Below are positions 11,407 to 17,917 of a stretch of DNA of 64,000 nucleotides, piece by piece. The translations under genes were made by a program, and so were the position numbers. The DNA is taken from positions 1,931,715 to 1,995,714 of the forward strand of contig NW_003314284.1 of NCBI RefSeq assembly GCF_000143415.4. Reading direction: 5' to 3'. A model generated the notes under the pieces. The model was not told where the DNA came from. It saw nothing but the letters and a program-made list of their open reading frames with translations, and made no database searches. The stretch is from Selaginella moellendorffii (Eukaryota; Plantae; Lycopodiophyta). Every line of letters starts with the position of its first letter. The stretch's first letter is position 1.

Positions 11407-12445
11407 ATGAAGTAAGTGTTTTCTCCTCGATTTGGATTGAGCTCTCTTTTTGTCAGCTTTGGGAGTGGCGATGCGATTCTTTGGGACGGTCCAATCCGTG
11501 GAACCACTGCTGGCGATGCGCTCTTCCGGTTCTACAACGGCTTCGCTTCCCGCAAGCAATCCGGGCAGGATCTAGGCAGCCGGCTCGATGTTCTTCGGCG
11601 CTTCGTCATGGCTGGAGGTACGATCGATTAAGTTTCTTGCAAAATGATGGAGTTCTTTGTTCATCAGAAAGACCCGCAACAGTTCCAAACCGAAGGTTGC
11701 CGCGCTACAGGCGAAGAATCGACACAGACAATCTAGCAGTTTTCCCGATAGACGGCGGGCGGAGGAAGGCATCATTTATCCTTGAGAAGATCAAGGAAGA
11801 TCTCGCGGATGCGGGGCTTCCAGTACCTCCAGCAAGTATACAACTTGAAGGTTTGTATTCGTCCCAAAGTTTGATGTTATCATTGTCTAGGGGCGGTCAT
11901 GGACTCGAAAGAGAAGCAACGCCTTCAAACCATCTTTGAATGGAGTGGCTTTGATGGGGTGAGTTCATTCTCTCGGTCATATAAGATTTATCCTTTCTTT
12001 CTCTCATGAGTCGCAGAAAATGGAAGATCTTGCTCCTAAAATCGCTCCCGTTCCTCGGGTTGTGAAAGGTTCCAAAGAGGAGAAAGAACATCTCATGAAC
12101 ACAAGTAAATCTTCCTCAAGAATCGTTTTTTCCACAGACCTTAAACTTGCTTCCCTGCAGTTGCTAGAGAAATAGGCGAGCGAGAGACGTTCCTGAAAGA
12201 GATGGAAAAGTTTGGGAGTGACAGGAAATACCGGGGACAAATCCGCTGGGAAATACAAGACGTAAGCTTCTCGCTTCTCTTCTTAAGACTACTGACAAAA
12301 TCAAAATCGCATTTTTGGCTTTCAGAGGTTAAATCAGATGAAGCAACTGGATCGTCTCATCGCTGAAGACGACGCTAATCTTCTCGCCAACAGAGTCATC
12401 CAAAGAGAAAGTCGCAACTCCAAGAAAGCCATCCAATGGCGCTAG
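11407..12445 (+). CDS. UPF0193/EVG1 family protein, 7 exons, missed by the ORF track
   Basis: Manual splice 11407-11411, 11457-11617, 11668-11850, 11891-11958, 12017-~12104, 12161-12261, 12326-12445 gives ...DSKEKQRLQTIF...IAREIGERETFLKEMEKFGSDRKYRGQIRWEIQDRLNQMKQLD. This resembles the UPF0193 motifs EKxRLQxIF and EIxERxxFLxxMExLGxxxxY. Confidence 0.72.
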
Positions 12446-12796
12446 AAAAACCAAAAAGAGAACCAGCGCAAAATTTTCCAAAAACGTGAGAGCCGCACTC
12501 TTGGACTAAAACATCTTCACGATTACCTGCGTGAAAGCGAAGAACCTGTGATCCCACTCTGGGATCCAACTTTAAACCTTTACAATTCTTTTCTATAAGA
12601 AAAGCTCCAAAATGCTTGGAGCTGGAGCGGTAGCACACCGTTGCATCAGGCCACCCTGCTCCACAAATCATATCGTCATCGTCTTCACCTAGAAGATCTC
12701 CGGCCGCGTAAGTATCGGAGACGCGATCGAGTTTGCCTTCCATACATCCGGGCCAGCGGGAGATCCCTGAATCGCGTGTTATAGTTGAGCTCTGGC
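12028..12796 (+). repeat. Left copy of local duplication (UPF0193 3' exons, intergenic DNA, scrambled BAM fragments)
   Basis: Aligns to 15174-15783; 12735-12796 matches BAM CDS 16260-16336 with deletions; 12708-12730 is an inverted copy of ~15808-15830. Confidence 0.88.
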
Positions 12797-12897
12797 TTGA
12801 GGCTTACGGAGAAAAAAAGACTCTCAAAAGAGGTTTGAAACCTACGTAGCGGATACAATCTTTTTTGGTGCGGCAACCCTCTTTGGATTTTTCCAGG

Positions 12898-15173: not shown

Positions 15174-15470
15174 TCTTGCCCCTAAAATCGCTCCCGTCCC
15201 TCGAGTTGTGAAAAGGTAACATCTCTTGACCACGTGTAAATCTTCTTCTAGAATCGCTTTTTCTTCCGAGCGAGAAGCGTTCCTGAAAGAGATGGGAAAG
15301 ACAGGAAAATCCGCTGGGACGTAAGCTTTTCTTTTCTCTTCACAAGACTACGGAACCAAAACTCATATTTTCGGCTTTCAGGGGTTAAATCAGATGAAGC
15401 AACTGGGTCGTCTCATCGCCGAAGACGACGCTAATCTTCTCACCAACAAAGTCATCCAATGATACGAAAG
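15174..15470 (+). pseudogene. Decayed duplicate of UPF0193 exons 5-7
   Basis: Homologous to 12028-12445, with several deletions and an early TGA (~15460); lacks the 5' exons. Confidence 0.8.
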
Positions 15471-15825
15471 TCGCAACTCCATCCAATGGCGACGCCAAAG
15501 GACCCAAAAAGAAGTTTTTGTGTTGTGGTCCAGAGCGAAAATTTCCCAAAGATGTGAGAGTCGCGCTCTTGGACTAAAACCTCTTCACGCGCTTCTCGAG
15601 CAAGCGAAGAACCTGTGATCCCACTCCGACACTTCCGGAAGAACTTTAAACCTTTACAATTCTTCCTATTCCTTCTTATTTATCCACAAGAAAAGCTCCA
15701 AAATGCTTGGAGCTGGAGCGGTAGCATCAGGCCACCTTGCTCCACACAAATCACATCGTCATCGTCATCATCTAGAAGATCTCCACCCAAAGAAGATCGA
15801 GAAAAATCGATCGCGCCTCCGCTAC

Positions 15826-17917
15826 TTACACCAATGCCGCGGCCGCCTCCTGGATCAAAGGCTTGGTCGCCACCAGCAGCTCCGAGGCCCGGTGCTCGTG
15901 CTCCCGCGACGACGAGCTCCCCTTGCCATCGCCAATCTCCTTGACAAACTGGACGAACCTCCTCCAGTTCTCCGGATGAAACAGCCGCTCGTTCATCCGC
16001 AAAAATGTGAAGCAACACATCGGCTCGTACGCCCGCTCCATACTCTCCTCGCCCTCCACCTCGAGCCGCGACTTCATCACGATCTGGTGATAGGCCCCCT
16101 CGTCGTAACGCGGCAGCGCGTTCTCTCCGGCCAGAGGAACACCCGCGGACTTGGCCGCCGCCACCACCTGCTTGAGCAGCCCCTCGGGACTACACTGCGC
16201 GGCCGCCGGCTGCTCCACGTCTCGCATCTCGAAGCACGTAAAGTTGAAAGTCACGCCGTGCCTTCCAAACATCCGGGCCAGTGGGAGATAGCCGTCCCTG
16301 AATCGCGTGTTGTAGTAGCCGGCCGTGAGCTCTGGCGCGTGCGAGCGAGTGCCATAGTGCCAGTGGATCCCTGCGACTTTGGCAGACAGCCGGACGGGGC
16401 TGCCTCGGAAGATGCCCTCGGCAGCCGTGAGCACCGACTCCCCGTGTTCTATCAGCTTGCCAGAGTACCACTCGAGGAAGAACCTGCCGTAGTCCGTGTT
16501 CCAGCCCCCGTCCCGCTTGAAGAAGATGCTGTCCTCGGGCCACTGGTTGTAGTGGCCGGCGTCCGAGGGAGCGCACCCCCAGTCGGGCTTGCCGATTGCT
16601 TCGGCGCTGGCTTTCAGGCTTGCAAGCATGTACTGCACGAAAAAATCCAACACTCAGAAAACAAGAAACAAACAAAAGAAGTTGGAAACTTACGTTGTCA
16701 TGGCACTGAAATTCCCCTACCCCCGGAAATTTCCAAATCCCATCTCTCTCCGGATACCCAGGATATCTCAGCTCTCCAGCAGGGCCCATCCCGACTTGGA
16801 TTTCCTGCGAAAGTAGCAAAAGGAAGAGTTCGTCAATCACACAATCCACCTCTGTACTTATCATCATCCCAGGCTAGATAGCTTACCACAATCACGTCTC
16901 CCAACATATCACTGAACGACTCCTTGAAGCTCCTCATAAAGTCCGAGTAAGCTTGCACCGGCGTTCTTCCTTTGAGCACCGGAAGGTGGTCGCATCCCAG
17001 AGAGAGGTACTCGAAGTTGCGGTTCCCGTAGCGGTCCGTGTAGACCATGTCCGGATTATTCTTTGCCTCCTCGACGATCCACCACGGCAGAGGGATGCTG
17101 CGGCACGCAAGACTTGACTTAGAAATCACCCAAGCAAAAAGCGGATCAAGCAGAAACATGGAAAGCAATCCAAAACAGAGCACGATGGAAAGGAAGAATG
17201 AACTTACAAGGCAGAGTCTCCAACATTTCCTCCGCATTGGTGGAAGGACATGACCGCCTGGACCTTGAGCCCGTGCTTCTTGGCCATCTCCAGGAGCTCC
17301 CGGTACCCTGACCAGTTGTAGTTGCAAGGCCCATCCTTCTCCACAATCCCCCACCACACATCCACCATCACACCCTCCACGCCCGCGCTCTTGAGCGCCT
17401 GGAAGCTCGCATTCATCGCTCTCGCGCGATTCACCTGGTTGTTCCCACTGTTGATGCTATCCAGAGGGAGCATCACGTACACCGGGACGCCACTCCTCTT
17501 ACCCTTGCTCGTCGGGGTCTCTTGCGCGCTGTGCTCCTTCTCCACGGGTGGAGCGATTTTGGACGGGAATCCACTGGGGGAGGGGCTGGAAATCCCGTGC
17601 TGGAGCTCAAACGGCCGCTCCTCGAAGAAATCCGGCGCTAGAGCTGGGCCATGCGATGCTACCTGGGACGGGAAGCAAGAGATTGGCGAGGAGGAGCGAT
17701 GCTGCTGGGGCTGCTGCTTCCACCATTCCTCCGCCGGGGGCGACGCCATATGGCAGATTATCGAGCGCCTGGCTAGGGTAGAGCACGATACCCTGGTCGT
17801 GGAGAAATCCGGATTCCAGACGCTGGCGCTCGTCGATGGCTCGGATTCCGGGAAGACAGCCCTGCCGCGGCCAAGGATTGAGCTGCTACTCATCAAGCCG
17901 GATGCTGCAGACGACAT
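15826..17917 (-). CDS. BAM1: Beta-amylase, plastid BAM1/BAM3 type, 4 exons
   Basis: Ser-rich transit peptide; [66 protein letters not shown]. Exact BAM subfamily is tentative. Confidence 0.9.

Follow-up and report, generated by a model that had tools for sequence, protein, structure and literature searches.

Rice insertions of 10–1000 bp form tandem duplications with ectopic filler, according to the summary in PMC7407515, which also covers patch-mediated or staggered-nick repair in plants (Vaughn and Bennetzen 2014, via PMC7407515). In grasses, break repair can likewise use genes as filler DNA, as summarized in PMC3445842 (Wicker et al. 2010, via PMC3445842), and staggered breaks at Drosophila inversion breakpoints leave duplications of up to ~1.9 kb (Ranz et al. 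2007, PMC1885836). Crinkler/CR-type proteins occur in land plants (review PMC5289972). Here, we describe a locus of the spikemoss Selaginella moellendorffii at which a CR-family gene lies between two direct copies of a single target, an A-X-A′ layout, within a window of 64,000 nucleotides (assembly GCF_000143415.4, contig NW_003314284.1, positions 1,931,715 to 1,995,714 of the forward strand). The left copy (A) carries an intact UPF0193 gene, the right copy (A′) runs into an intact beta-amylase (BAM) gene, and the insert (X) sits exactly at the junction between the copies. The best reading, at a probability of roughly 0.55, is in our view that the insert was templated in one step, either at a staggered break or through a template switch during replication. 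The evidence favours copy-and-paste insertion that has recurred and that duplicates very long targets, and not a classical transposon.

The locus resembles patch-mediated or staggered-nick plant repair, as outlined in PMC7407515, in that a direct target duplication surrounds copied DNA without element ends and the filler has several sources, nearby DNA among them, and can lie in either orientation. The summary there describes insertions of 10–1000 bp with short duplications, whereas the spikemoss loci have duplications of 1–2.6 kb and their filler is a whole gene of 2.4–3.3 kb, with one family recurring as cargo. Offset breaks that are filled in, duplicated host genes and the decay of one copy are also features of the Drosophila staggered breaks (PMC1885836), although the duplicates are inverted around an inversion there and direct around an insertion here. 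Grass gene movement, as summarized in PMC3445842, shares the copying of a gene-bearing fragment into a break by synthesis-dependent repair, which leaves a gene at a non-collinear place without transposon ends. However, that model puts the break where the target-site duplication of a transposable element is filled in, and the summary mentions no kilobase target duplication, whereas no transposable element is seen at the spikemoss site. As for Crinkler and CR nucleoside triphosphatase (NTPase)-nuclease proteins, the ATPase (and C-terminal) module of the cargo appears homologous to modules found behind the Crinkler header of Pfam in proteins of fungal or environmental origin. The window gene, by contrast, lacks the header, its PHD finger has decayed and its C-terminal domain is without canonical nuclease residues. 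On balance, the scar is probably an enlarged, kilobase-sized form of a repair route that plants are known to use, unusual in the size of its duplication and in the recurrence of one family as cargo.

Comparing the window with itself pairs 12028–12701 with 15174–15784 in 16 colinear blocks of 75–100% identity (the main ones 84–95%). A gapped alignment of the left against the right copy gives 77% identity over 484 columns (BLAST E = 3e-59), and the self-comparison reveals no second repeat of such kind in the first 35 kb of the window. A separate match between 12734–12785 and 16259–16316 (84%, E = 5e-7) runs on to 12799 and 16337. The left copy (11800–12701, no strand assigned) comprises the UPF0193 body and the common convergent 3′ region; alignment with the right copy of the window reveals it from 12028 onward, and alignment with the right copy of L001, the corresponding locus on scaffold GL377576.1 of GCA_000143415.2, from ~11800. 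At its end lies a 66-nt remnant of the BAM last-exon coding sequence (12734–12799, minus strand), which repeats 16259–16337 at a Kimura two-parameter (K2P) distance of 0.05 and marks junction J1. An inverted patch of 27 nt (12708–12734, no strand assigned), copied from 15803–15829 (89% complementary) and spanning the BAM stop codon, sits at a 474-nt deletion within the left copy; it is found in L001 too. The right copy begins with a dead UPF0193 and the conserved convergent 3′ region (15160–15784, no strand assigned) and continues into the BAM 3′ untranslated region (UTR) and last-exon end (15785–16337, minus strand), whose counterpart in the left copy is only the 27-nt patch and the 66-nt remnant. 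The right copy of L001 starts at the equivalent of ~11800, and ~330 bp have since been lost there in the window. Because of this start, the ancestral duplicated target probably measured ~1.5 kb, reaching from within UPF0193 to ~510 bp into the BAM last exon.

The 3′ part of the intact UPF0193 gene spans 11899–12445 on the plus strand (exons 11899–11958, 12017–12104, 12161–12261 and 12326–12445, the last including the stop). RNA contigs confirm GT..AG joints at its introns (11959–12016, 12105–12160 and 12262–12325), the exon frames are open, and the exon stretch 12163–12261 matches Pfam PF05250 above the cut-off (E = 9.5e-8). The right-hand UPF0193 carries deletions of 15, 41, 22 and 9 nt in exon and intron sequence as well as an in-frame stop, and because of these lesions it is most probably a pseudogene. 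BAM, a glycosyl hydrolase family 14 (GH14) gene, is the intact downstream neighbour (15826–17917, minus strand, stop codon at 15826). It matches PF01373 (E = 3e-58 and 4e-33) and is 99.0% identical to its counterpart in L001, where a 604-aa GH14 gene is called at this position. The left copy thus combines the spliced UPF0193 with a shortened, partly inverted BAM fragment, and the right copy retains an unbroken junction of UPF0193 3′ end, ~330 bp and BAM 3′ end. Because this junction is uninterrupted, the two genes appear to have stood tail to tail ancestrally.

An earlier note on this DNA, made from its letters alone, had paired 12028–12700 with 15174–15783 and 12735–12796 with 16260–16336, and the alignments bear out both repeats. 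It had also described an intact left UPF0193 with BAM pieces opposite a decayed right UPF0193 with an intact BAM, an ancestral tail-to-tail order, and an insertion together with a very long duplication of the target, after which both host genes still functioned. The splice joints, the PF05250 match, the deletions and stop, the unbroken junction and the placement of the insert all agree with this description. Its cassette between long flanking copies stands as well, but its duplication length of ~1.1 kb gives way to the ~1.5 kb indicated by L001, and its boundaries shift: the right copy starts at ~15160 and not 15174, and the insert occupies ~12800–15159 and not 12797–15173.

The convergent UPF0193/BAM 3′ region (12568–12701 and 15642–15784) is ~93–95% identical between the copies, far above the rest of the duplication. 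Within it, a 39-nt identical run (12597–12635 and 15688–15726) contains an 8-bp palindrome, AGCTCCAA..TTGGAGCT. Both copies of this region may be under constraint, because each now serves another gene's 3′ end.

Seven further CR-family loci were taken from the same public assembly, making eight in all with that of the window, and the A-insert-A′ layout is found at three of the seven (L003, L005 and L007). At L003, a decayed PPR gene and an NmrA 3′ piece (6669–8613) are followed by a 2.9-kb insert and an intact 657-aa PPR open reading frame (ORF) that lies tail to tail with NmrA (11541–14118); within the insert lie a CR copy with an internal deletion and a fragment of DUF674. L005 consists of an intact SBDS gene (8428–9581), the CR gene and a decayed SBDS copy (12178–12671). 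At L007, a lipoxygenase 3′ end (7657–8634) and a second one (11901–12789; 984 nt, 84%) enclose a 3.3-kb insert with a CR fragment and inverted lipoxygenase and Hus1 snippets. We scored a scar wherever 3.5 kb upstream and 3.5 kb downstream of a gene matched on the same strand over at least 400 nt. The test was positive at four of the eight CR loci versus one of 43 neighbouring genes (Fisher p = 0.0013), and p = 0.0067 without the window locus, the source of the idea. Target duplications range from 0.98 to 2.6 kb, and their length differs by locus, with no fixed size. Paralogs have in common only the region from start to stop codon, introns included, and ~40 nt of UTR; insert boundaries vary by locus, and no upstream or downstream sequence or hairpin is common to the eight loci compared. 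The fragments captured in the inserts originate within 8 kb of their own locus.

Under a one-step templated insertion, the chromosome would have broken with its ends staggered ~1.5 kb apart, or a replication fork would have stalled in the BAM last exon. One version would start from two nicks ~1.5 kb apart, with the long overhangs filled in and a copied gene fragment joined between them; paired-nick experiments are reportedly the work of Schiml et al. 2016. The other version would have a broken fork switch template to a CR locus and re-enter 1.5 kb behind the break. A 2.4–2.5 kb copy of a CR-family gene, introns included, would thereby be templated from another locus, and synthesis or joining resumed ~1.5 kb behind the break would double the target around the insert. 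Since one complete copy of each host gene remains, selection would have preserved the left-hand UPF0193 and the right-hand BAM, with the redundant halves left to decay. Within a gene-dense genome, mainly insertions with a long, neighbour-sparing duplication would survive. We infer that duplication and insertion were a single event, that host repair was the agent, through fill-in and end joining at a staggered break or through microhomology-mediated template switching, and that survivorship acted as a filter.

Consistent with host repair, a direct target duplication lies next to the insert, breakpoints are variable, and the inserts are patchworks with pieces of nearby genes, some of them inverted (DUF674 at L003, lipoxygenase and Hus1 at L007, the 27-nt patch in the window). 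The variability of the boundaries and the presence of local snippets, some of them inverted, agree with template switching or with joining of the polymerase-theta type. Several points weigh against this account. No donor locus was identified among the eight loci, leaving junction microhomology unreadable. The scar-test controls are old conserved neighbours, not young dispersed duplicates, and the association with CR genes is stronger than generic repair predicts, unless recency and survivorship explain it. Half of the CR loci (4/8) are without a flanking duplication, which could reflect age or a different route, and decay after the event, not the event itself, could have produced the deletions and the inverted patch. 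The bias toward one cargo family could stem from recent expansion and survivorship or from the family's own activity, although a working nuclease is unsupported by the data.

Divergence provides a relative timescale. Flank copies differ by K2P 0.13–0.16 in the window and 0.10–0.13 at L003, and the CR copies of these two loci by K2P 0.06–0.12; flank and CR divergences agree in age. The two haplotypes differ by a mismatch fraction of 0.01–0.02, which would make the window event far older than the haplotype split. Because the flank copies at L007 (84% identical) and L005 (68–78%) are older, the insertion process appears to have recurred over a long time.

Could the A-X-A′ structure stem from misassembly, or from a repeat that was collapsed or expanded? 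This is extremely improbable. Its sole supporting point is that some contigs join 12588 to 15683, whereas the copies differ by 13–16% and by many indels, L001 matches the window at ~97% identity on either side of the locus and likewise contains the insert between its two copies, and each of the two junctions is spanned by Logan contigs of other runs (X1 record 3; X2 records 9 and 10). Because the second assembly shows the same layout, the structure is not an artefact. The joints of 12588 to 15683 (RNA contigs) and of 12589 to 15673 (a DNA contig of depth 8) were considered as an empty allele and rejected, as they pass through the 39-nt identical stretch and both assemblies have the insert. We read them as graph chimeras or mis-laid L001-type sequence; the identical stretch is longer than the Logan assembly word, which we take to be 31 nt (the index samples 31-letter words), and the 12588-to-15683 joints connect two expressed 3′UTRs. 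No empty site was found in the two assemblies: the other haplotype or strain carries the insertion too. A real structure might also have formed in two steps, by a plain 1.5-kb tandem duplication and a later CR insertion that landed at its junction by chance. Such a junction of redundant copies would be a neutral landing pad in a compact genome, and L005 does hold CR-free local duplications (2063–2715 versus 5636–6406; 17122–18961 versus 19978–21383). Nevertheless, at each of four independent loci the insert falls precisely on the junction, the 43 control genes include no CR-free tandem duplicate of gene halves save one DUF674 pair, and flank and CR divergences are similar, making the two-step course distinctly unlikely.

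Movement or capture by a classical transposable element (a Helitron, Pack-MULE or retroelement) is highly improbable and largely refuted. The patchwork inserts, with gene fragments in both orientations, do resemble Helitron or Pack-MULE cargo, and the 3′UTR of L001 contains a 13-bp perfect hairpin. This hairpin is confined to L001, however, and nothing outside the coding region is common to the loci; kilobase direct duplications are no feature of such elements, and the fragments come from less than 8 kb away. Cut-and-paste transposons have terminal inverted repeats and short target duplications of fixed length, but the duplications here measure 0.98–2.6 kb, and the ends of the window insert bear no terminal inverted repeats or long terminal repeats (LTRs), as the earlier note had seen. 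Helitron copies have a 5′ TC end and a 3′ hairpin-CTRR end in common and do not duplicate their target, but the 3′ regions of four loci are without common sequence. LINE-mediated retroposition would leave an intronless copy with a poly(A) tail and a short target duplication of variable length, and is at odds with the four spliced introns, with intron sequence common to paralogs and with the lack of a poly(A) tail or A-tract at the 3′ end. The remaining alternative is that CR genes are themselves mobile, their ATPase and nuclease-like module, or a partner of the protein, nicking DNA 1–2.6 kb apart and promoting the copying of the gene into the gap, as a new element class without fixed ends. CR-related modules are said by Zhang et al. 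2016 to derive from Tn7/Mu-type transposons. Enrichment of the scar at CR loci (4/8 versus 1/43), the multicopy state of the family (contig depth 140–555 versus 14–17) and the expression and splicing of the CR gene all favour this view, and if it were true, the kilobase target duplication would be the element's signature and the reason for its spread in a compact genome without killing its neighbours. Yet no conserved ends whatever occur between loci, truncated or internally deleted copies (L003, L007) bear the same scar, and inserts include unrelated local fragments. The putative nuclease has Q-x-T and not E-x-K, with a variable Asp, the presumed Walker B Asp is Asn, and fold searches are weak (Foldseek E = 0.2, VIA Z = 4.5). 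We therefore consider self-mobility unlikely, and the earlier note's suggestion of mobility through the CR gene's nuclease finds no support. Host repair or template switching fits better than an element-encoded reaction, because nothing outside the coding region is common and the inserts contain neighbour-gene fragments. Among the checks the earlier note had named beforehand, the independent assembly and the flanking duplications at L003, L005 and L007 bore it out; shared termini were absent from the eight loci, and the other haplotype proved to be occupied.

The locus offers a base-pair view of a whole gene entering a gene-dense plant genome between convergent genes ~300 bp apart, with neither destroyed. 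A target duplication of more than 1 kb, followed by reciprocal decay of the redundant halves, would be how the neighbours survived. Since half of the loci examined in a single Crinkler-related family, which is lineage-specific and multicopy, bear the scar, generic repair plus survivorship can be tested against self-promoted spread.

The insert (12800–15159, plus strand) measures ~2.4 kb in the window and ~2.5 kb in L001. Within it, the CR gene is preceded by ~100 bp of sequence and followed by a 3′UTR with AATAAA at ~15151; terminal repeats are absent. The CR gene (12898–15084, plus strand) has exons at 12898–12910, 12968–14250, 14299–14439, 14495–14791 and 14846–15084, as defined by splice joints, and is 88% identical to SELMODRAFT_409910. 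All four introns are spliced out in RNA contigs, showing that the gene is expressed. One RNA contig of the gene (run X2, record 9) spans 12606–12908, extending ~290 nt upstream of the start codon and into the left copy. Its transcription thus either starts in duplicated DNA of host origin or continues from UPF0193 by read-through. DNA contig depth is 140–555 over the gene body versus 14–17 in the flanks, and because the gene-body depth is so far above the flanks, many similar CR copies must exist. A window-specific 78-nt deletion at 15054 took the family's stop codon, and the last 10 codons of the window gene are new. Homology to L002 and L001 stops at 15054, which was considered as an element end and rejected on account of this deletion; L001 and L002 run on into a common stop codon and UTR.

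Protein searches used the window gene models exon by exon, never joined, and the database protein P0121 (the L001 allele) stood for the whole protein. The large exon (12968–14250) contains a Walker A motif, GNSGVGKS, and matches only SELMODRAFT proteins, the best at 88%. An exhaustive profile search of 1.84 billion proteins returned only 44 relatives, mostly from spikemoss, with one from a hornwort and a few fungal or environmental. Three of six remote relatives scanned (P0144, P0163 and P0164) carry the Crinkler header PF20147. Matches of phmmer to header-bearing Crinklers over residues ~50–195 (E = 5e-6 to 8e-4) are weak but consistent, suggesting that the CR ATPase module is homologous to their P-loop NTPase. 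Neither P0121:1-640 nor the CR exons of the window give any Pfam match, the header domain included, and only ~75 residues precede the P-loop. In paralogs, a PHD finger (P0122: PF00628, E = 2e-5) separates the ATPase from the C-terminal domain; SELMODRAFT_421858 is one paralog whose finger is intact. The corresponding exon (14299–14439) is degenerate in the window and L001, with several deletions and an AG acceptor that is now AT, and in its spliced form it meets a stop codon, which the NCBI model avoids by using an acceptor further downstream. The subfamily of the window gene has Asn (HLINQK) at the position of the presumed Walker B Asp, which appears as HLIDQK in several paralogs and as YLVDS in Crinkler-header proteins. 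This substitution and the decay of the PHD exon jointly hint at a loss of enzymatic function. The predicted model of the C-terminal domain has a predicted local distance difference test (pLDDT) score of 73–94 over residues 1–130 (10-residue block means). Foldseek places XPF/Hef/ERCC4-type nuclease domains at the top (weak, E = 0.2), and a VIA search gives mixed folds at a weak best Z of 4.5. The alignment has Q-x-T at the place of the E-x-K of a restriction-endonuclease (PD-(D/E)xK) fold, and the putative Asp is not invariant. We accordingly call the domain nuclease-like only, an unconfirmed label; we do not treat it as an active nuclease and claim no nuclease fold.

The two alleles of the CR gene (window 12898–15054 versus L001 10001–12157) differ by 4.0%, compared with 1.0% for PPR and BAM and 2.1% for the dead right copy. 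These differences are clustered, with, for example, 14 in 13098–13197 and none in 14098–14297, which suggests gene conversion from paralogs or diversifying selection.

Public gene models have been misled by the scars, which explains several chimeric or missing models. SELMODRAFT_409910 (L001 10001–12989) fuses the CR gene to dead UPF0193 exons, and the real UPF0193 is uncalled in the gene table of that locus. The P0141 model (L007 10001–12786) fuses a CR fragment to a dead lipoxygenase end. At L003, the decayed PPR copy (6765–8497) is annotated and the intact 657-aa PPR ORF (11597–13570) is not.

Upstream of the duplication lies an intronless PPR gene (8962–11328, plus strand) with a 788-aa ORF and PPR family matches, 99.0% identical to L001. 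Used as a search handle for orthologous loci, it returned only family members of ~30% identity. An Rfam scan of the window gave no matches.

The sole positive control of the scar test lies at L003 (316–2076, 2416–4172 and 5719–6519), where two DUF674 paralogs bracket a cysteine-rich repeat ORF and a fragment that resembles folylpolyglutamate synthase by eye. This stretch may represent the same type of insertion with different cargo. L002 contains an inverted duplication of ~3.6–5 kb (10790–14388 versus 19286–15697, 91–94%) with duplicated RING-finger genes, one arm holding a CR gene with an intact PHD finger and the other a partial CR copy. Further along the window, 35158–53800 is repeat-rich, with 1.4-kb direct repeats at 35349–36782 and 41131–42589 (95% identity) as candidate LTRs; a number of related copies lie in both orientations, and short tandem repeats form an array inside the zone.

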